A stretch of DNA of 63,109 bases, the filler included, from Dimorphilus gyrociliatus (Eukaryota > Animalia > Annelida), in the NCBI GenBank assembly GCA_904063045.1. It is 5 parts of 5 records of this genome, joined end to end, with 100 filler letters (N's around TTAATTAATTAA, not from the genome) between each part and the next. Parts side by side here need not be neighbours in the genome. Positions count along the whole stretch, not along the records: positions 11,393 to 19,904 come from CAJFCJ010000288.1; 4 more parts are not named here. One strand, written 5' to 3'. Numbering within the stretch: position 1 is the stretch's first letter; each line of letters begins with the position of its first letter. Position numbers and translations under genes: made by a program. Under the pieces are notes generated by a model, which searched no databases, was not told the origin of the DNA, and worked only from the letters and a program-made list of their open reading frames with translations. Below, in pieces: positions 11,393-19,904 of the stretch.

Positions 11393-11683
11393 ATAATGTT
11401 AGGATAAATTAAGTACATAAAAAAAATTAGGTACATAAAAAAATCCTATTAAATTACCATAAAATTGTTTTTTTTTAATTATTTTAACCCCTATTTTGTT
11501 CATTTTGGTAAGGATAAATTAGGTACATGGTAAATTGGTAGGGTTTTTTCTATCCCCCCATAAAAATTAAATAGAGTTTTTTACCATAAATTTTTTTTTT
11601 GTCTCCATCGAAAAAATTAGGTACATAAAAAATTTTTGAGGGTAATTTAACAACATTTTTGAAAAAAATTGGATAAAACTATT

Positions 11684-12889
11684 TTATTCGATAAATTGTT
11701 TTAAAACATATCTAGTTGCAACTTTCATATTATTATTCTCATCCTTTATTGTTATTCTATTATCATTATGAATTGATATAACAGTGTATATTTCATCATA
11801 ATATAATGATGTCAATGGATATCTTCTAGTATTGACATTATTATCGAAGTCTTTGGCTAATAAGTATTTTCTCCCCACTACTACTTGGTTGCTATCGTTT
11901 GCTCTTGCATTGTATTCATTAATATAACTACTTACATATTTTATATAATTATTTCTTGCTTCCTGAAGTGAGAGAATGACGTTATTATTATAATTATTGG
12001 GATCTACATTACGGAATAACACAAAGGGCTTAAAACCTGTAGCACTATGCTTACTATTGTTGTACTGATATACTACATCCTCATGAACCCTAATCCAGTT
12101 TACTTCACCTCCTAAAGCCTTTCTCATCCTGCTTTTTAGTGTTCTATTAAATCTTTCGACAACTCCCTGTGATTGTGGATGTCGAGGCCGGCCAGTTACA
12201 TGCTCAATATTAAACATACTACATATGTTTCTGATTCTTTGGTTAATAAATTCTCTCCCGTTATCTGTATGGAGAGTTTTCCACGGGCCTTCTGAATAAA
12301 ATAAACTTCTTAAAATTTCTGCTACAGATTCTGAGCTTTTATCATATAACTTAAAACTGAATGCAAACTTCGAAAAACAGTCTATTAAGTTTAAAACATA
12401 TCTATAATTATCATTAAATTCAGAATATGTACTCAGATCTATAATGTCGGCCTGTAAACGTTCATGTATATTATATATAAGAATAGGTGTTATAGGTCTT
12501 GTGATATTGATTGTATTTTCTCTTTGACAGCCCTCACATGAAGTAATATATGATATAATATCGTTTACTTTTATATTTATATAAAGATTGTCAATGATTC
12601 CCTTCATCTTATTAGCACAGAGATGACTTGGTAAATGAGCCTCCTTGATTATATTCTTTTTCTCTTCATGCTCAAAATCACATATATATTTCTTTCTGAC
12701 TCGATTTTGCTCAACATAAAGTGTTGAGTTACTATAAAAAAACCTTGCTGATTTCTTGATAAACTGTCTTTTACGTTCGCCTTTAAGCTCGCGTGGTATA
12801 ACTTTATCAACAACGTATGATATTATCTCATTTTTCTCATTTATATTCGAAATAACTGGAATCATGGCCATGGGTGATACAAAATTCAT
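11684..12889 (-). CDS. Retroviral-type (rve) integrase/transposase, intact, 401 aa (likely start at Met7, 12871)
   Basis: H2C2 zinc finger (EAHLPSHL...SCEGC), core QADIID / HTDNGREF / QSQGVVERFNRTLK; no RT, gag or protease. Confidence 0.92.
   Translation of the reverse strand: MNFVSPMAMIPVISNINEKNEIISYVVDKVIPRELKGERKRQFIKKSARFFYSNSTLYVEQNRVRKKYICDFEHEEKKNIIKEAHLPSHLCANKMKGIIDNLYINIKVNDIISYITSCEGCQRENTINITRPITPILIYNIHERLQADIIDLSTYSEFNDNYRYVLNLIDCFSKFAFSFKLYDKSSESVAEILRSLFYSEGPWKTLHTDNGREFINQRIRNICSMFNIEHVTGRPRHPQSQGVVERFNRTLKSRMRKALGGEVNWIRVHEDVVYQYNNSKHSATGFKPFVLFRNVDPNNYNNNVILSLQEARNNYIKYVSSYINEYNARANDSNQVVVGRKYLLAKDFDNNVNTRRYPLTSLYYDEIYTVISIHNDNRITIKDENNNMKVATRYVLKQFIE
12872..12874 (-). 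promoter_or_regulatory. Microsporidian-type CCC initiation motif before integrase Met7
   Basis: Minus strand reads AATTTTGTATCACCC-ATG. Confidence 0.5.
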
Positions 12890-13183
12890 CGAATAAAATA
12901 GTTTTATCCAATTTTTTTCAAAAATGTTATTAAATTACCCTCAAAAATTTTTTATGTACCTAATTTTTTCGATGGAGACAAAAAAAAAATTTATGGTAAA
13001 AAACTCTATTTAATTTTTATGGGGGGATAGAAAAAACCCTACCAATTTACCATGTACCTAATTTATCCTTACCAAAATGAACAAAATAGGGGTTAAAATA
13101 ATTAAAAAAAAACAATTTTATGGTAATTTAATAGGATTTTTTTATGTACCTAATTTTTTTTATGTACTTAATTTTTCCCAACA

Positions 13184-13948
13184 TTAAATATTATCAAAAC
13201 AACAGAGTTATATACACCAGCTCAAACAAAATTACTTAATGACTTAAATTATAATATAAATGATACTTCTGTACTTAGGGTAATACTTTTACAATGTTTT
13301 ATAAGTGATTCTTGTAATAACAATGCTTTATTTTATGTAAAAAAATTGAAAAAGTTGAAAAACGTTGTTAATGTTTTACTTAAAAAAGAAGAAGAAGAAT
13401 TTTACGATCAGAGGGATTTGGAGAGTTGGCAATACAAAGAAATAAGTGAGAATATAAATTCTTTATTAGAAATAGAACTACTAGAAGAAGTTGAAAATGA
13501 TTTTAAAAGTACGAAAAATCAAAAACTGGGGAATGGTAGACTTTCTGATAAGTGGGAGAAATTAATAAATATAACAGTAATTGCACCAATTTATAAACTA
13601 CGGGAATATGAGAGATTTAAATATAGAAAAGAAAGTAAAGATATTTTGAAGAATTTCAATTTCTTATGGTTTACAGTACCTGTAAAACAAATAATAGGAG
13701 ATGAAGGAATGAAAATATTAAGTTTCATGTTAAGTCGTAAATATACAATAAAAAGCTTAAAAGAGATGAATATAGAAGTATTTAATTTAGTATGTGATAT
13801 GTATTTAGGAATATTTATGTACAAAACTAAACATTACTTCTTTAATGACGTATTTAAAGATATAAAAGAAATTAAGTTTCTAAAAGAAAACGAGGCTCAC
13901 TATCAATACTTCTTTTTAATTCATGAAAGATTAATTAAGAATACCTAA
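13184..13948 (+). pseudogene. Hypothetical protein gene, 5'-truncated by the Ginger-like insertion
   Basis: Frame is open from the TIR edge (LNIIKTTELYTPAQ...) for 54 extra codons before the TTG start called by the ORF track; no in-frame ATG until about residue 122 of the track ORF. Confidence 0.65.
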
Positions 13949-14143
13949 AAATACAACTTTTATAAAAATTTATTTATTAGGATTTTTTATAATTTATGAA
14001 ATTTCGAAATAATTATGTCTTATGTAATTTTTCTTTATAAAATATTCTATTATCCTATTTAGGAAATTTAAAATCATTTTATATAAAAATAGTAATTATA
14101 ACCTATTTGTAAAAAAATGACTTAAAATATCAACTTTATTAAA

Positions 14144-14380
14144 TTATTGTTCATCACTATCATTACATTCTGTATCACATATACTAATAATATTATCTCC
14201 TCTTACAAATATTTTATCATGTTCTATTGTTCCATTACTATCAAAAATAGTTGAATCTACTAATGTCATATTATAATGTTTATCAAACTCTATTAAATTA
14301 CCTACCAATTTACGGTTGTTTCTTAAATTTACAATTATTTGTGAGTTTAATAAACTATTTAAATATTGTTCTAATTTCAT
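14144..14380 (-). CDS. SMD2: Sm-fold snRNP protein, closest to SmD2 (LSm3 less likely)
   Basis: IVNLRNNRKLVG..EFDKHYNMTL and IFVRGDNII match the Sm1/Sm2 motifs; CCCCA precedes the ATG. Confidence 0.75.
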   Translation of the reverse strand: MKLEQYLNSLLNSQIIVNLRNNRKLVGNLIEFDKHYNMTLVDSTIFDSNGTIEHDKIFVRGDNIISICDTECNDSDEQ

Positions 14381-14692
14381 TGGGGTGTTTTTATATCGGA
14401 AATTTATAAAATATTTTAGGAAATGTATATTTAATTTACACGAACACGGTAATTTTTAATAAATATCAGGTTGTATAGAAACATACATTTAAATAAATAC
14501 TTAAATAAGCTCATTTTTAATATTAATAGATAGTTTGATAAATATTTTGATATTTTAATAAACGGAATTTTCTATATAAAATTTTAATTGATTCGTAAAT
14601 TTAAGAGTTAGTTCGTTTATCACTAAAAAATTTATAAATCGTATGACATACAAAACAAGATGAAATACAAATAGAACATATTTTAAAGTTAT

Positions 14693-15187
14693 ATGCTGTT
14701 TTTTTTTGAACTGATTAATTCTTTTGTTCTGAAGCTAAGCTATAGAAATAGATTTTTGAGTATCTGTGAAGGTAGTCCATGCTTAGTAAGTAGTAAAGAA
14801 AAGGCCGTAAGACTAAAATTTGTAAATAAACATGTTGTATTGAGAGACTATAAGAAAAACTTTAATATAGATAACGAAGGAAAGCTAAATTTTTCTAAAA
14901 TGCCACATAAGTTTAAGAAAGAATTTATAGGGTATAGAAATAAACATAAAAATCGATTTAAAGGAAGATTTAGACTTAGGATCGGCAAAAAATGTTTAGA
15001 ATCAAAGAATGGACTATTTGTATTGAATAGGTGTAATTTGAGTCAAAAGAGACAGATTTTTCAAAAGCTTAGAAGAGGTCATAAATTTAAAAAAAAGACG
15101 ATAACAAAATCAATACATAATGGAAAGATTCAACATCTTTTATTTAGAAAATGGTTTAGACGTAATATATTTAAAGATCCTTGTTAA
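14693..15187 (+). CDS. Secreted ricin-B-lectin-like protein 1 (basic)
   Basis: Hydrophobic N-terminus; FRLRIGKKCLESKNGLFVLNRCNLSQKRQIF beta-trefoil-like lobe. Confidence 0.6.
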   Translation: MLFFFELINSFVLKLSYRNRFLSICEGSPCLVSSKEKAVRLKFVNKHVVLRDYKKNFNIDNEGKLNFSKMPHKFKKEFIGYRNKHKNRFKGRFRLRIGKKCLESKNGLFVLNRCNLSQKRQIFQKLRRGHKFKKKTITKSIHNGKIQHLLFRKWFRRNIFKDPC

Positions 15188-15246
15188 TAAAAATAATTCG
15201 TTTTATATTATATTTTATTTAAATATTAAGCTAAATGTTACATTAA

Positions 15247-15318
15247 GCGTCAATAGTTCAGCGGTCAGAATGCGGCCCTTCCAAGGCTGAGATCCGGGTT
15301 CGATTCCCGGTTGACGCA
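15247..15318 (+). tRNA. tRNA-Gly: tRNA-Gly (anticodon TCC)
   Basis: Acceptor GCGTCAA/TTGACGC, anticodon arm CGGCC-CTTCCAA-GGCTG, GGTTCGATTCC T-loop, downstream oligo-T Pol III terminator. Confidence 0.97.
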
Positions 15319-15658
15319 TTTTTTTATATTTTTTCGCCCCCTTTTAAAAATATAATAAAGACATCCAAAAATATATATTGTAATATTTTTTTGCTTTCCT
15401 ATTAAATTGTATTTAAAATAGTTTAATAAACCTATCAAAAAACTACAAAAAGTATCATATAATATTTTTATATCAGGACAACTTTACTGATGCTCTTTAA
15501 AAATATTTACATATCTTTATTCTGTCTTATGCAAAATAGCTAATTGATTTTTGTAGAAAATTTTATGTAATATTCAATTTAATAAGTCAGTTACAATTTT
15601 TATCATAGGATGATCTTGACATTCAAAACGTTATTATTCTAAAAAAACTATAAAAGGC

Positions 15659-16399
15659 ATGACAGTCTTGTTTATAATGAAAATTATACAATGTTTTCTA
15701 TTATTTATAAACTTTTCGAGTACTTATAAACTAAGGTTGGCGGGAAATGATCAGTATATTTCTGGTAGTGGCCAGAACACGACCTTGGCAAACTATGATA
15801 ATGCGTTTGATATACAGGAAATTAGGAAAAACGCAAGTGGTAGCCTCTTTAAGGTTATGGCAGGACGAAGGAGATACTTTGATATGGCAGGAGGTGGGAC
15901 TAAGTTAATATTCTGGCATCGCGGTCATGGTGGTAGAAACCAAAGATTTACATTATCAAAGTTAGCAAATGGTATGTATCAAATAAAGGTTATGGGTCAG
16001 TGTATTAAACACCATGGAGGTGGTAAATTCTATAGAACAAGATGTAGCACAACAGCAACAAACCAGCAATTTGAAAAAGTTACTAAAAATCCAACGCCTA
16101 AACCTAAGCCCAAACCAGTGCCTCAACTTAAACCAAAGGCCATGAGAAAAAATGCTTTACTTAAAAAAGCAAAACTTCCCAAGCAACCAAAAAAAGAAAA
16201 ACAGAAAGCAAAAATTGCAGACCTTAAATCTAAAAATAAAACGTTAAAAAAGAAACTAAACAATAAAAAAGGCGAAAAGTCGACCACGTCCACCTCCAGT
16301 GATGACGATAAACTCAATATGAGAGACTTAAAAAGGATTATTAGAAAAGAACTACATCCAAGCTGTTGTGATAATCCTTTAAGGCGTCTGTGGTGTTAA
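15659..16399 (+). CDS. Secreted ricin-B-lectin-like protein 2 with Pro/Lys-rich tail
   Basis: Signal-peptide-like start; YFDMAGGGTKLIFWHRGHGGRNQRF and YQIKVMGQCI...RCSTTATNQQF (QxF repeats). Confidence 0.8.
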   Translation: MTVLFIMKIIQCFLLFINFSSTYKLRLAGNDQYISGSGQNTTLANYDNAFDIQEIRKNASGSLFKVMAGRRRYFDMAGGGTKLIFWHRGHGGRNQRFTLSKLANGMYQIKVMGQCIKHHGGGKFYRTRCSTTATNQQFEKVTKNPTPKPKPKPVPQLKPKAMRKNALLKKAKLPKQPKKEKQKAKIADLKSKNKTLKKKLNNKKGEKSTTSTSSDDDKLNMRDLKRIIRKELHPSCCDNPLRRLWC

Positions 16400-16749
16400 C
16401 ATAACTGATTTTTTTTAAATAGTAATTAGACGAATCTATCCAATAAAACACAATCATACACTTTTCTAGATGTAATTAAACGGTTTACATGCTATTTTTA
16501 TACTAATATCTTACTTATAAACACAATGTTTAACTTGTAGTATTTTAAGTATTAATGTGTTATACTTGATTTAACCTATTTTTAAAAAACTTCTATTTTT
16601 ATGACTAAGGCTATAAATAACTAGAATTTCTATAAAAGCCTAAAATCTGATTTCGTTAAAATTTATAAAATAACACTTGAAAGAAGGAATGTACTATCTA
16701 CATTAAAACGTTAAAGTAATAATTTGAATCTATTTTCAGATCAGATTTA

Positions 16750-17382
16750 ATGAATGATAAATCAAACACTGGTTTCATAAGCATTTATAAAAAAACATCG
16801 GTGGTTTTACTCAAAATGTTATTTTATGTTATCATTGCATTCAGTTTTAAACTAATGCTAAAATCTAGGATAAAATATTTGGGTGGATACAAAGGAAACA
16901 CTAAATTGACTGGTATTAGGAAGGATGCTTTAGAGTTAACTGAAGTTAGAGAGAAAACAGGGCCTCTAATAATGGGAAAAACTGATGTAAACAGATATTT
17001 TGATATGGAGAATGATAGAGTGTTAGTATTAAATGCGAACGGACGAGAAACACCAAGTCAAAAATTTAGATTAAAACCATTAGATCAAATTAATGAAACG
17101 TATATGCTAGGAGTAGAGGATGGTTGCGTAGAGTATATACAAAAACATTTATTTGAGAAAAGAGCTTGCGATCCAGAAGATGACAACCAAGTATTCTTTT
17201 ATGTAAGAACAGGAAATCCTTTTGATAGAACAGGAGAACCACCAGAACCTAAAGATTTAAGTGAAGCAGAAGAAATGATAAACGATAGAAAAAAAGCAGC
17301 AGATGATTTCAACGATAATGATGAAAAAAGACTAAAAAAGTTAATAGCAGATGGTCTGAATAGAAGAGATCTAGTAATTTAA
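16750..17382 (+). CDS. Secreted ricin-B-lectin-like protein 3 (probable start at 16816, MLFYVIIAFSF)
   Basis: YFDMENDRVLV..PSQKFRL and GCVEY..FEKRACDPEDDNQVF; acidic C-terminal region. Confidence 0.72.
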   Translation: MNDKSNTGFISIYKKTSVVLLKMLFYVIIAFSFKLMLKSRIKYLGGYKGNTKLTGIRKDALELTEVREKTGPLIMGKTDVNRYFDMENDRVLVLNANGRETPSQKFRLKPLDQINETYMLGVEDGCVEYIQKHLFEKRACDPEDDNQVFFYVRTGNPFDRTGEPPEPKDLSEAEEMINDRKKAADDFNDNDEKRLKKLIADGLNRRDLVI

Positions 17383-17481
17383 AAAAAGAACACTAAAAAG
17401 ATTAATAACAGAAGAGATCTTGTAATTTAAAAATGGAACATTAAAAATATTAATAACAGAAGAGATCTAGTAATTTAAAAA
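17359..17481 (+). repeat. 48-bp tandem repeat (~2.6 copies) covering the RBL3 stop codon
   Basis: AGAAGAGATCTWGTAATTTAAAAA recurs at 17362, 17410 and 17458. Confidence 0.9.
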
Positions 17482-17627
17482 TAATTTTTTAATAAATGTG
17501 AATAAAAAGCATAGATGTTAAAAATGTGTGATTCCATAAACATATTTATGAATCATTGTTTGTAGAACAGATGTAACAATTATTAAAATTAAATAATAAT
17601 CTGACTTTCTGTTCACAGGGGTTAATT

Positions 17628-18788
17628 TTATTTTTTTTTATTAAAAATCAATAAAACATCATTTAAATTACTTCTAATCAAAGGACTGCATCTCTGAATT
17701 AAAAAATTAAACTCATCAATGCTTTTTGGCTTGTTTTTAATTAATGAAATAAAATCATAAGGTTTTAGAACGTAAAAAAGTGATTCATTGCTATTTTTAG
17801 CTAGAAAATCTATTAATTTAAATAATTCAATTGTTTGAGAATCAATTAAAAATTCTTCAAATTTTGATTTTTTTTTTAAATTTTTAGATTTTTTTTCTAT
17901 TTTGAAAAATTTAGTAGAAGATTCAAAAAAAGTATTAAAAATATGTTCTATTACTAAATTAATATAAACTTCAATAGGTCGTATTCTGTAATCTACATAA
18001 ACATCATTGTTGTATTCTATATCTTCAAATTTAAAATTTAAGTATTTTTTAACATTTTCTTGATCTTCTGTTAATTTATTATCATTTAAATTAGACTCTT
18101 TATTGATTATAAGAGAGTCACTAAAGCTTATTTCATATTCTAAAAAACTCAGATTGGCTTCATTTGTCATAAAAATAATACATCCATCAAAATTTATATG
18201 TTTTAAAAGGTTTCTCTCTTTTATTAAGTCTAATACAAAAATATTATTTTCTGTTATAAATATGAAAAATGAAGTATAAGGTTCATATGTTCTGTAATAT
18301 TCTCTTCTTGAATCTATAAATATGGTTTCATTTTCAAATACTGATTTTAGCTCTTCTTCTTTCCTAAAATATATAACGTTTTTATTTTCTGGAAATTTGA
18401 AAGAATTTAAAGGTTTTTGTGTTGAAAAATTAATTTTTAGCTCTAAATCGTTAAATAAAGGTTTTTCTAGGTTTCTTGGTATTACCATTTGTATGTTTTT
18501 TTCTCCAATTTCTTTAATTCTATTTTGTTCTAAATTTAACAAATTTACTTTATATTTTCCTTTAGGATTCTCATCAAATGCTATTACTACATCTCCTTTG
18601 TTATATTCTCTTTTTTCAAGTCTTTTAATAGAGAGATCTATATCTTCTAGTAACGGTTCATCTTCTATTTTATTTAAACTTTTATTAATTAAGTTTATTA
18701 TCTCATCGATTTCAGCTTTTCTCATTTTATTGCTTATTTTATTAATATTTTTATTTATATATTTTACTAATTCTAAACATTCTTCCAT
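17628..18788 (-). CDS. RRP6: Rrp6-like exosome subunit (EXO + HRDC), degenerate active site
   Basis: IFIDSRREYYRTY..FVLDLIKER resembles ExoI; VDYRIRPI resembles the Rrp6 DWRIRPL motif; HRDC LAKNSNESLFYVL..KPKS...SPLIR; TACCC precedes the ATG. Confidence 0.8.
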   Translation of the reverse strand: MEECLELVKYINKNINKISNKMRKAEIDEIINLINKSLNKIEDEPLLEDIDLSIKRLEKREYNKGDVVIAFDENPKGKYKVNLLNLEQNRIKEIGEKNIQMVIPRNLEKPLFNDLELKINFSTQKPLNSFKFPENKNVIYFRKEEELKSVFENETIFIDSRREYYRTYEPYTSFFIFITENNIFVLDLIKERNLLKHINFDGCIIFMTNEANLSFLEYEISFSDSLIINKESNLNDNKLTEDQENVKKYLNFKFEDIEYNNDVYVDYRIRPIEVYINLVIEHIFNTFFESSTKFFKIEKKSKNLKKKSKFEEFLIDSQTIELFKLIDFLAKNSNESLFYVLKPYDFISLIKNKPKSIDEFNFLIQRCSPLIRSNLNDVLLIFNKKK

Positions 18789-18923
18789 GGGTAACTATTT
18801 TTACTTATATTAGAATAAAATGTTTCCTAATACACCCCTAGTAAATATTTTATTCTACAAAAAAAATGGTAAATTATTAAACAATACATACTACTTTGAT
18901 AATAAATAATTTTAAAATTTTTA

Positions 18924-19796
18924 TTAAAGAATAATAACACCACGTTTTTTTAAAACTTGGTATGAATGCTGGTCAATAACTGGAAAAGCATAACCTATCT
19001 GTAGTATCTTTAGTTTAGCCATTTTTGCAATATTTTGATAATCCTCAACCTCTAAATTCACACACCAGTCCATATATAATTCTTTTATTTCGGTCTGTTT
19101 TATAGTTTTTAGTAAACCGCATTTTTGTAAACACCCTTTCATATTTAAAATTCTTAACTTTTTTAATAAAAAAATACTCATATAATCAATTTCTATTAAT
19201 TCTTGGTTCCAAGATACGTTCAATTCTTCAAGCTTTTCTAAATTACAAATGTTTCTTAAACCGCCACCTTCAATATCACATAGTTTAATGTTAAGAAATT
19301 CTAAGCTTTTTAGGTGAAAAATTGCATTTAAATCTTCGTTATTTAAGCTATTGTATGATACGTTTAGTACTTTCAGCTTAGTTAGGTAAAATCCCTCCTT
19401 AAAACAGCTTTTTGTTAGATTGCAATTCTCTAATTCCAACTCTACTAGGTTTATCAAATTAAATATACTATCAATGTATTCTGATATACCAAGACTACAT
19501 TTTATTTGAAGTACTCGTATATTCTTTATAAATTTACCATCTAATAGAGTAATTTCGTCAAAAAAGCAGTTTTTGATTTTTATTGTAGTCAAATTTTCTA
19601 GTTTATGTAACTTTTCAATAATATTGTGATCTATTATACATTCTTCTAGCTTTAATTTTAATCCATTATTGTAGATAAATTTATCCAGTTTTGATAGATT
19701 AACGAACTTATTTTTATATATTGAAATAGAACCTTTAATAAAAACTATCATAAAAAATAAACTTAATATATTATTTGTATAGATACAAGTTAACAT
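18924..19796 (-). CDS. Leucine-rich-repeat protein with hydrophobic N-terminus
   Basis: Repeated LxxLxxLxLxxN/C units (LTKLKVLNVSYN, LEKLEELNVSWN); TACCCT precedes the ATG. Confidence 0.85.
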   Translation of the reverse strand: MLTCIYTNNILSLFFMIVFIKGSISIYKNKFVNLSKLDKFIYNNGLKLKLEECIIDHNIIEKLHKLENLTTIKIKNCFFDEITLLDGKFIKNIRVLQIKCSLGISEYIDSIFNLINLVELELENCNLTKSCFKEGFYLTKLKVLNVSYNSLNNEDLNAIFHLKSLEFLNIKLCDIEGGGLRNICNLEKLEELNVSWNQELIEIDYMSIFLLKKLRILNMKGCLQKCGLLKTIKQTEIKELYMDWCVNLEVEDYQNIAKMAKLKILQIGYAFPVIDQHSYQVLKKRGVIIL

Positions 19797-19904
19797 AGGG
19801 TAATTTTTATTTCCCTTTTTTATATAATCAAATATATTGTAATTTAGAACCTGTCTGTCAAAACAATCCCATCTCTAATGATTCCAAGCAGGATGATTAA
19901 AAAA

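Follow-up and report, generated by a model that had tools for sequence, protein, structure and literature searches.

Positions 11,393-19,904 of the window (63,109 nucleotides in all), an 8512-base piece taken from record CAJFCJ010000288.1 of the Dimorphilus gyrociliatus assembly GCA_904063045.1, were analysed. This piece is very probably a stand-alone contig of nuclear DNA from a living microsporidian whose genome was sequenced along with that of another organism. A first-pass annotation had claimed a microsporidian genome fragment at this place, and the claim is supported by two independent genes, encoding an Rrp6-like protein and an integrase, by CCC and AATAAA signals at the starts and stops of genes, and by lectin and leucine-rich-repeat (LRR) features that are documented in Microsporidia.

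Gene content and organisation

The overall GC content of the piece is 25%, with 27% in coding sequence and 20% in the spacers. Eight protein genes (complete or cut ORFs) and one tRNA gene were found, and 73% of the 8512 bases are coding. Seven of the eight ORFs are intact, and all eight protein genes end in the stop codon TAA. The genes are separated by spacers of 59-350 nt and none of them requires an intron, so that the tight, intronless packing reported earlier is borne out. The features are given below by coordinates and strand.

11394..11697, no strand: left terminal inverted repeat, cut by the contig edge, with a TGTTA terminus at 11397 and four copies of AATTAGGTACAT; 304-nt arms, 99% complementary
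11684..12889, minus: stand-alone integrase/transposase, 401 aa (395 aa from Met7, 12871); Pfam rve 3.6e-16, Integrase_H2C2 6.8e-6
12883..13186, no strand: right terminal inverted repeat, with a ...CAACA terminus at 13183; complementarity to the left arm, counterpart in Dictyocoela
13172..13948, plus: 3′ part of a gene, frame already open within the right repeat, first possible start an internal Met; open frame of 254 codons
14144..14380, minus: Sm-fold protein (SmD2 or LSm3), 78 aa; Pfam LSM 4.7e-17, residues 6-68
14693..15187, plus: first lectin-like gene, 164 aa, hydrophobic N-terminus; weak paralogue, weak Pfam match to CDtoxinA (beta-trefoil), 0.034
15247..15318, plus: tRNA-Gly, anticodon TCC; ARAGORN, Rfam tRNA 69.9 bits
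15659..16399, plus: second lectin-like gene, 246 aa; signal-like N-terminus, modelled beta-trefoil core, Lys/Pro-rich tail, Cys-rich end
16750..17382, plus: third lectin-like gene, 210 aa; 28% identity to the 246-aa protein, N-terminal hydrophobicity
17359..17502, plus: 48-nt unit in three tandem copies, repeating the end of the third lectin-like gene (its final six codons and stop)
17628..18788, minus: Rrp6-like protein, 386 aa, exonuclease-fold core and HRDC domain; family search, PDB profile and Foldseek; TTACCC before the ATG, AATAAA over the stop
18924..19796, minus: LRR protein, 290 aa, signal-like N-terminus; Pfam LRR_8 1.9e-7, LRR_6 above cut-off; TTACCCT before the ATG, AATAAA over the stop

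The housekeeping proteins had been described as shrunken, and their lengths agree with this. The Rrp6-like protein has 386 aa compared with 733 aa (yeast) and 885 aa (human) for the PDB chains, and the Sm protein has 78 aa compared with 110-118 aa for SmD2. Besides a tRNA gene, the piece would carry housekeeping genes in reduced form: the Sm protein is small, and Rrp6 is half-length, with its fold and HRDC domain retained. Pfam and Rfam scans found none of the markers diagnostic of the phylum (rRNA, polar-tube or spore-wall genes) within the 8.5-kb piece. The tRNA was the sole match of the Rfam scan, and no viral hallmark genes were found by the Pfam scan. The piece also contains a transposon of its own, of which the first-pass annotation had listed merely the integrase.

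Signals at the starts and stops of genes

The Sm gene begins as CACCCCA-ATG, the gene for the 386-aa protein as TTACCC-ATG and the LRR gene as TTACCCT-ATG. In the integrase gene, CACCC stands directly before the second in-frame ATG (Met7, base 12871), and the first ATG is without a CCC motif. The motifs are therefore as they had been reported, that of the integrase belonging to the Met7 ATG. In the whole piece, on both strands, CCC lies at most 6 nt upstream of only 4 of the 290 ATG triplets, each of these being the start of a gene. For this enrichment the binomial tail is 1.2e-6 when four of seven genes are counted, and 8.8e-5 when three of seven are counted. The box is missing from all three lectin-like genes.

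AATAAA overlaps the stop codon in the integrase, first lectin-like, 386-aa and LRR genes, and is found 4 nt after the stop of the Sm gene. It is thus on or just after the stop in five of the eight genes, compared with 97 of all 823 TAA triplets in the piece (12%; p = 9e-4), and the earlier observation that it overlaps several stop codons is upheld. A CCC-like box just ahead of the start codon, and AAUAAA close to the stop, are documented microsporidian signals (PMC2803860), as the first reading had assumed. The genes would then have an ordinary microsporidian organisation, in short leaderless transcription units with the CCC box just before the ATG and AAUAAA at the stop.

The Rrp6-like protein

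Proteins of the Rrp6/EXOSC10 group are recognised by an exonuclease fold of the RNase D type with an HRDC domain after it. When 1.8 billion representative proteins were searched exhaustively, 31 relatives of the 386-aa protein were obtained. Eight of these are named, and every one of the eight is microsporidian or named RRP6: Trachipleistophora hominis Rrp6, proteins of Hepatospora eriocheir, Enterocytozoon bieneusi, Enteropsectra breve, Ecytonucleospora hepatopenaei and Pancytospora epiphaga, Nematocida sp. RRP6, and one JGI 'RRP6'. The remaining 23 are metagenome or read-assembly proteins without a name. The family surfaced in the exhaustive search only; a word-index protein search with the 386-aa protein found no relatives, nor did a metagenome scan. 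Gene order was compared at the loci of five relatives (including a metagenome relative, Hepatospora, Enteropsectra and T. hominis), which had only the Rrp6-like gene in common with the piece.

The profile of the family matched Rrp6/EXOSC10 structures in the PDB at 1.5e-26, in an alignment spanning the exonuclease and HRDC domains, and Pfam HRDC was matched by 21 of 23 family members. When a model of the 386-aa protein (pLDDT 77-86 in the core and about 90 in the HRDC domain) was compared with known structures by Foldseek, the best 13 fold matches were all Rrp6. Searches with the 386-aa protein alone gave a Cullin match in the PDB, which was dismissed as chance, and a sub-threshold match to SPARC_Ca_bdg (E = 0.09) as the sole Pfam match.

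The DEDD-Y catalytic residues of Rrp6 are D238, E240, D296, Y361 and D365 in yeast numbering. At these positions the 386-aa protein has D, R, (N), V and I, where the register at D296 was set by eye and is less sure. The E240 position is non-acidic in all 23 family members in the register of the profile-PDB alignment. The naming of the gene as Rrp6 therefore holds as far as homology is concerned, by family profile and fold, and the catalytic residues are lost. We predict that the 386-aa protein is an Rrp6 homologue inactive as a nuclease, and the Rrp6 of the sampled microsporidians also appears to have lost its catalytic residues. Because the fold and the HRDC domain are kept and the catalytic residues are gone, the half-length Rrp6 would probably serve as a scaffold of the nuclear exosome. 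A literature search for a nuclease-dead microsporidian Rrp6 found no description.

Microsporidian Rrp6-like proteins, such as ELQ76328.1 (T. hominis), KAI5172432.1 (Nematocida sp. LUAm3) and ORD96754.1 (H. eriocheir), resemble the 386-aa protein in their length of 370-460 aa, in the exonuclease-fold core and HRDC domain, in two motifs, YR(S/T)Y and D(W/Y)RIRP, and in the non-acidic residue at the E240 position. The 386-aa protein differs from them in its identity of 18-28%, in retaining the first catalytic Asp, in a very long branch, and in the spacing between the two motifs, which is about 101 aa here, in Nematocida and in yeast, and 73-79 aa in 21 other members. In the tree of the family the branch of the 386-aa protein measures 2.87 changes per site. 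It meets Nematocida, which may be due to long-branch attraction; as the protein is unplaced, no clade is claimed from this tree.

A Ginger-like transposon at the left end

Judged by its sequence, the left-end element is a Ginger-like DNA transposon and not an LTR element, because a copy in Dictyocoela has the same layout, with an integrase between long inverted repeats. The integrase gene noted at first pass is present, and it belongs to this inverted-repeat DNA transposon. A reading as an LTR retrotransposon was rejected, the repeats being inverted, not direct, and gag, protease and RT all being missing.

The integrase has the zinc-binding residues H85/H90/C118/C121 and the catalytic residues D151, D209 and E245. 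Its closest relatives are proteins of about 400 aa, likewise stand-alone integrases, from Dictyocoela muelleri (45-47% identity) and Enteropsectra breve (39%), in alignments that cover 72-92% of the query. Four of the top five matches come from Dictyocoela or Enteropsectra, and the other is a read-assembly protein without a name. The matches that come after the microsporidian ones are mostly rve plus chromodomain proteins of about 360 aa, an architecture typical of Polinton/Maverick integrases. The Polinton/Maverick group stands next to Ginger2 (PMC2836005). An exact look-up of the integrase found no record, and a metagenome scan for an exact 27-mer of its gene gave no match.

The sequence AATTAGGTACAT occurs eight times in total, four times in each repeat arm, compared with 0.12 expected, and these copies are putative binding sites. 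In Dictyocoela, the inverted repeats on either side of the integrase copy are 187 nt long and 99% identical, and their ends read TGTTG...CAACA; the 4 nt next to these ends are TTAT and ATAA, not a direct repeat. The TGTTA/TGTTG termini lie 3 nt inside the repeat end, and the left flank of the element in the piece is lost at the contig edge.

Ginger2/TDD elements (Bao, Kapitonov and Jurka 2010, PMC2836005) are recognised by ends of the form TGTNR and by target-site duplications of 4-5 bp. [quoted passage not shown] In contrast to Ginger2/TDD, with lengths of 2.7-6.7 kb (PMC2836005), it is much shorter at about 1.8 kb, and its inverted repeat extends 3-6 nt past TGT. Among Microsporidia, Ginger has been reported in Anncaliia algerae (PMC5751038).

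With an intact H2C2 and DDE integrase between 304-nt, 99% inverted repeats, the left 1.8 kb would represent a recently active Ginger-like cut-and-paste transposon. The gene at 13172..13948, whose open frame matched no Pfam family, was probably cut by the insertion. The transposon would thus have inserted into a gene, and the assembly would have broken at the transposon.

Lectin-like, LRR and Sm-fold proteins

The three lectin-like genes are adjacent and on the same strand, their products have hydrophobic N-termini, and the tRNA-Gly gene lies inside the cluster. The 246-aa and 210-aa proteins are paralogous (28% identity, E = 3e-11), and the 164-aa protein is weakly related to the 246-aa protein (E = 0.026), with Cys and Q-x-F positions in common. 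The true start of the third gene is probably Met23 at 16816, which would give a signal-like N-terminus. The 246-aa protein matched Pfam RicinB_lectin_2 at 1e-3 (20.2 bits, below the gathering cut-off of 25.6). Its AlphaFold2 model, made from 3 aligned sequences, had a pLDDT of 70, and the top Foldseek matches in the PDB were all beta-trefoils (TM about 0.6, E about 0.01). A profile of the three lectin-like proteins found no match in the PDB. The tandem secreted ricin-B-lectin-like genes of the first-pass annotation are thus confirmed as a tandem cluster with two clear paralogues; the third member is weak, and the ricin-B call consists of a sub-threshold Pfam match and a beta-trefoil model.

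The LRR protein has five regular repeats and a hydrophobic N-terminus. Both clustered ricin-B-lectin-like genes and LRR families with signal peptides are documented features of Microsporidia (PMC3749934, PMC9224602). The published RBL clusters of E. cuniculi, N. ceranae, S. lophii and N. bombycis (PMC3749934, PMC9224602), compared by description, are like this one in their small, putatively secreted proteins, their tandem duplication, and their weak, degenerate ricin-B signal with a beta-trefoil fold, which is a modelled one here. The cluster described here differs in that the Pfam score is below the gathering cut-off and a tRNA gene lies within it. According to the literature, the putatively secreted beta-trefoil proteins and the LRR protein would belong to families thought to act at the host interface.

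The Sm fold of the 78-aa protein is clear from the Pfam match (LSM, 4.7e-17), and by the PDB scores the protein may be SmD2 or LSm3. The best eukaryotic match was SmD2 at 1.5e-6, followed by LSm3 at 2e-5, and archaeal Sm proteins scored above both. The N-terminal extension of SmD2 is missing from the protein, and a word search with it found no relatives.

Origin of the DNA

Several observations count against a microsporidian origin. The piece has no phylum-diagnostic marker, most of the Rrp6-like relatives (23 of 31) are nameless, and the branch of the Rrp6-like protein is long and unplaced. Moreover, no common gene order was seen at the five relatives' loci, the word search found no relative of the Sm protein, and the lectin-like genes are without the CCC box and have a ricin-B assignment under the Pfam threshold. 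Transposons are able to move between hosts, and the integrase alone is therefore no proof of origin.

Other sources with AT-rich, densely packed genomes were considered, among them amoebozoans, apicomplexans, nucleomorphs and giant viruses, and we regard an origin of this kind as extremely improbable. Several traits of the piece are each known from such genomes: low GC, closely spaced genes without introns, a tRNA gene, LRR and lectin-like paralogues, and an inverted-repeat integrase; Dictyostelium also carries TDD/Ginger2 elements. However, all named relatives of the 386-aa protein among the 1.8 billion representatives read are microsporidian or named RRP6, and the integrase has four microsporidian proteins and one nameless read-assembly protein as its top five. 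Viral hallmark genes are missing from the piece, and CCC boxes that directly precede the ATG are known as microsporidian signals (PMC2803860). Since the flanks of the piece are missing, microsporidian DNA that had been transferred into the animal chromosome, and is now inert with no live parasite, was also considered. We regard such a transfer as highly improbable, because intact ORFs (7/8) with their start and stop signals kept, transposon repeats 99% identical around an intact integrase, and different GC in coding sequence and spacers would all be unexpected in a decaying insert.

The DNA could also be microsporidian and yet come from something other than a parasite of the assembled animal, for example material in the gut, prey, a hyperparasite living in another symbiont, or contamination between samples. 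Metchnikovellids infect gregarines of annelids. The piece has no host link, both of its ends being non-host sequence and the left end a transposon repeat, and the length feature of Rrp6 that is common to Nematocida and yeast hints at a lineage beyond the best-sampled clades. Nothing within the piece speaks against this origin, but we consider it unlikely, as such contigs in host assemblies usually come from infection of the sequenced individual (PMC12558613).

On the preferred reading, that of a contig from a living microsporidian, the lineage is taken to be unsequenced because the collections searched held nothing closer than about 28% identity for the Rrp6-like protein and 47% for the integrase. 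The parasite had been called possibly undescribed; the lack of a close relative agrees with this, and shows just that the lineage is unsequenced. We suggest, tentatively, that the source may be a deep or otherwise unsampled microsporidian lineage, at family level or above, of which there is no genome so far, because its Rrp6 has a very long branch and retains an ancestral stretch of about 25 aa, found otherwise in Nematocida and yeast only. The 40 microsporidian genomes from arthropod hosts of the Darwin Tree of Life (PMC12558613) provide a parallel, as parasite contigs in animal data that were recognised by composition, gene density and homologues. The lineage described here differs from those cobiont genomes in being without a relative above these two identities.

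The analysis flags non-host DNA in an animal assembly. We advise that it be separated from the host record, because it would otherwise be annotated as animal genes. The parasite genome is probably recoverable from the same reads at no extra cost. Microsporidian contigs are a useful, and by now fairly common, by-product of animal sequencing, and microsporidian genomes are few relative to the diversity of the phylum. If the source does prove to be a deep lineage, and the animal a non-arthropod such as an annelid, the remaining genome from these reads would close a gap in the tree of Microsporidia. If the lineage is deep, the same data would also show Rrp6 to be a nuclease-dead exosome subunit across Microsporidia. 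The element at the left end points to a compact family of Ginger-like transposons, each an integrase between inverted repeats, that is common to distant microsporidians and is labelled 'Pol polyprotein' in public records.

Gene content and organisation

The piece at positions 11393-19904 (CAJFCJ010000288.1) comprises 8512 bases with no N, at a GC content of 25%. We built a gene map from a mechanical listing of open reading frames, family scans and a tRNA search:

11684-12889 (-), integrase gene, flanked by two 304-nt inverted repeats
13172-13948 (+), open frame without a start codon
14144-14380 (-), Sm-fold gene
14693-15187 (+), lectin-like gene 1, small protein of 164 aa
15247-15318, tRNA-Gly(TCC), between lectin-like genes 1 and 2
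15659-16399 (+), lectin-like gene 2, small protein of 246 aa
16750-17382 (+), lectin-like gene 3, small protein of 210 aa
17628-18788 (-), 386-aa gene (Rrp6-like)
18924-19796 (-), leucine-rich-repeat (LRR) gene, 290 aa

Coding sequence and the tRNA occupy 73% of the piece, spacers measure 59-350 nt and no gene needs an intron, in agreement with the intronless, tightly packed genes described in the first-pass annotation. All stops are TAA, and GC content is 27% in coding sequence and 20% in spacers. An Rfam scan of the piece returned the tRNA only.

Start and stop signals

CCC motifs had been reported directly before the ATG of the SmD2, Rrp6, LRR and integrase genes, and the sequences are as written: CACCCCA precedes the start of the Sm gene, TTACCC that of the 386-aa gene and TTACCCT that of the LRR gene. 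In the integrase gene, CACCC stands ahead of the second in-frame ATG, which makes Met7 the likelier start. CCC occurs in the six bases upstream of only 4 of the 290 ATG triplets on both strands of the piece, and all four are gene starts. Given this background rate, the binomial tail amounts to 8.8e-5 if three of the seven genes are counted and to 1.2e-6 with four of the seven. The box is absent from all three lectin-like genes. AATAAA, which was said to overlap several stop codons, does so in four genes and lies 4 nt past the stop in a fifth; it therefore marks five of the eight gene stops, compared with 12% of the TAA triplets across the piece (p = 9e-4). Both signals are known from Encephalitozoon cuniculi and four other microsporidians (PMC2803860). 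Transcripts of the piece would be short and nearly leaderless, beginning at the CCC box and ending with the AAUAAA of the stop.

A microsporidian Rrp6 homologue of 386 aa

As a single query, the 386-aa protein gave no Pfam family above threshold, no meaningful PDB match and an empty word-index search. When 1.8 billion representative proteins were searched exhaustively with HMMER, 31 relatives with E up to 1e-3 were recovered, mostly of 370-460 aa. Eight were named by cluster look-ups: Trachipleistophora hominis 'Rrp6', Hepatospora eriocheir, Enterocytozoon bieneusi, Enteropsectra breve, Ecytonucleospora hepatopenaei, Pancytospora epiphaga, Nematocida sp. LUAm3 'RRP6' and one JGI 'RRP6'. The remainder are unnamed metagenome or read-assembly proteins. 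A profile of 23 members, the 386-aa protein included, matched both the exonuclease and the HRDC domain of solved Rrp6/EXOSC10 chains (1.5e-26), and 21 of the 23 matched Pfam HRDC. The AlphaFold2 model made from this alignment had a mean pLDDT of 64 (core 77-86, HRDC domain about 90); its best 13 PDB matches are Rrp6, and RNase D comes next. The profile and fold matches support the original Rrp6 call, the 386-aa protein being a microsporidian homologue of Rrp6.

Homology and phylogeny of Rrp6 had been proposed as a check of origin. On the homology side, the named relatives are microsporidian or labelled RRP6; the maximum-likelihood tree gave the 386-aa protein a branch of 2.87 changes per site, and none of its neighbours was supported. 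Identity to the other alignment members is 18-28%, and about 15 billion collected sequences contain no closer relative. Two metagenome scans, one for relatives of the protein and one for an exact 27-mer of the integrase gene, found nothing. As there are no close relatives, the lineage is one that has not been sequenced, which does not show it to be undescribed. Most named microsporidians are not known to have a genome sequence.

Catalytic positions were read in the register of the profile-to-yeast alignment for the 23 family members. At yeast E240 all 23 have F, Y, L, C, K or R and never an acidic residue; only the 386-aa protein and Nematocida retain D238, and Y361 and D365 have for the most part given way to other residues. 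At D296 the family consensus has C, and the 386-aa protein, read by eye, has N. With the DEDD-Y positions replaced across the family, the sampled microsporidian Rrp6 proteins appear to be nuclease-dead, and the 386-aa protein probably serves the nuclear exosome as a non-catalytic subunit. We found no paper on nuclease-dead microsporidian Rrp6.

The spacing from YR(S/T)Y to D(W/Y)RxRP is 101-102 residues in the 386-aa protein and Nematocida, and 73-79 in the other 21 members. The 386-aa protein aligns with Nematocida nearly without gaps, and 25 gap positions are required to align it with its best hit; yeast has about 23 extra residues between the motifs relative to the family profile. This rare length change, a single character, hints that the lineage lies outside the clade of T. 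hominis, Enterocytozoonidae, Enteropsectra and Pancytospora, which carries the deletion. Against this placement, the 386-aa protein is slightly more identical to members of that clade. A GTP_EFTU-domain gene (636-671 aa) precedes the Rrp6-like gene in Hepatospora (locus L002, 226-3382) and Enteropsectra (locus L004, 7332-11236); the LRR gene holds the corresponding position in the piece, so that this local order is not shared.

A transposon encoding an integrase

The arms flanking the integrase gene (11394-11697 and 12883-13186) are 304 nt long and 99% complementary, the left one cut by the contig edge. Each contains four copies of AATTAGGTACAT (11407-11626; 12954-13173), eight in all against 0.12 expected, which are plausible transposase binding sites. 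The integrase has an H2C2 finger (H85, H90, C118, C121) and an intact D151-D209-E245 triad, and lacks GPY/F and YPYY motifs. Its best matches are Dictyocoela muelleri 'Pol polyprotein' entries (303-400 aa, 40-47% identity), one protein from Enteropsectra breve (39%) and one read-assembly protein without a name (38%); rve and rve plus chromodomain proteins are more distant. The Dictyocoela gene lies between 187-nt inverted repeats of 99% identity (locus L006, 3998-5625, from SDVU01000604.1), a read-assembly contig of 1447 nt has 30-nt inverted repeats at its ends, and a pair of 49-nt inverted repeats, spaced 3.4 kb apart, encloses the Enteropsectra copy. The integrase belongs to a DNA transposon common to other microsporidians.

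The element termini, TGTTA...CAACA in the piece and TGTTG...CAACA in Dictyocoela, have the TGTNR form described for Ginger (PMC2836005) but sit 3 nt inside the end of the repeat. A Ginger element is on record for the microsporidian Anncaliia algerae (PMC5751038). The element appears to be Ginger-like, with features that fit the Ginger2/TDD group. Arms that are still 99% identical, together with an intact integrase gene, suggest that the element was active recently. At 13172-13948 a frame is open for 254 codons from within the right repeat, with no ATG before an internal Met; in the simplest reading it is probably a gene cut by the insertion, its 5′ part lying past the contig edge.

Stand-alone integrases of about 400 aa are annotated as 'Pol polyprotein' in Dictyocoela; the loci considered are L006, L007 and L008. 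With inverted repeats (187 nt, 99%) on either side, these integrases are part of DNA transposons of about 1.6 kb and not of LTR retrotransposons. For the element in the piece, an LTR retrotransposon was rejected since its repeats are not direct and gag, protease and RT are absent.

Origin of the piece

Two unrelated genes of the piece have microsporidian affinity, and its start and stop signals are microsporidian; together these support the microsporidian genome fragment first proposed. The organisation is dense and intronless, and the transposon and open reading frames are intact. We infer a nuclear-genome contig of a living microsporidian, co-sequenced with something else. Integration of the piece into a host chromosome is unlikely given that its genes and signals are intact, and the relatives found speak against another AT-rich source, such as an amoebozoan, apicomplexan, nucleomorph or giant virus.

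That animal assemblies contain parasite contigs is well known and already put to use: sequencing of arthropod hosts has yielded forty microsporidian genomes (PMC12558613). Every feature of this contig is of a known kind and would not surprise a specialist; the finding is of use for assembly cleaning and for recovery of a divergent genome.

Sm, lectin-like and LRR proteins

The 78-aa protein annotated as SmD2 has a clear Sm fold (Pfam LSM, 4.7e-17). The subtype is less firm: among eukaryotic PDB chains SmD2 scored best (1.5e-6), LSm3 followed at 2e-5 with longer coverage, and the SmD2 N-terminal extension is missing.

Tandem secreted ricin-B-lectin-like genes had also been proposed. The genes are in tandem, and two of their products, of 246 and 210 aa, are paralogous (E = 3e-11); the 164-aa protein is weakly similar to the others (E = 0.026), with two Cys and a Q-x-F position in common. 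Hydrophobic N-termini are present in all three and in the LRR protein, in the 210-aa protein if Met23 is the start. Pfam RicinB_lectin_2 scored 20.2 bits, under the 25.6 cut-off. A model of the 246-aa protein core (pLDDT 70, alignment of three sequences) matched only beta-trefoil proteins in the PDB (TM about 0.6, E about 0.01), among them FGFs, designed trefoils and ricin-type lectin domains.

Several microsporidians are described as having clusters of secreted ricin-B-lectin-like proteins that arose by tandem duplication (PMC3749934; PMC9224602). LRR families are likewise described as expanded, and those of Spraguea lophii have signal peptides (PMC3749934). The lectin-like and LRR genes of the piece are candidate members of families of this kind. 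Their products are putatively secreted, with a presumed role at the host interface.

The 246-aa protein ends in a long Lys/Pro-rich tail (16090-16399; PKPKPKP... and KKxK runs) with a Cys-rich end, SCCDNPLRRLWC, which its paralogues lack. At 17359-17502 a 48-nt unit carrying the last six codons and stop of lectin-like gene 3 is repeated three times in tandem; the 3′ end of this gene has thus been triplicated into its 3′ flank.
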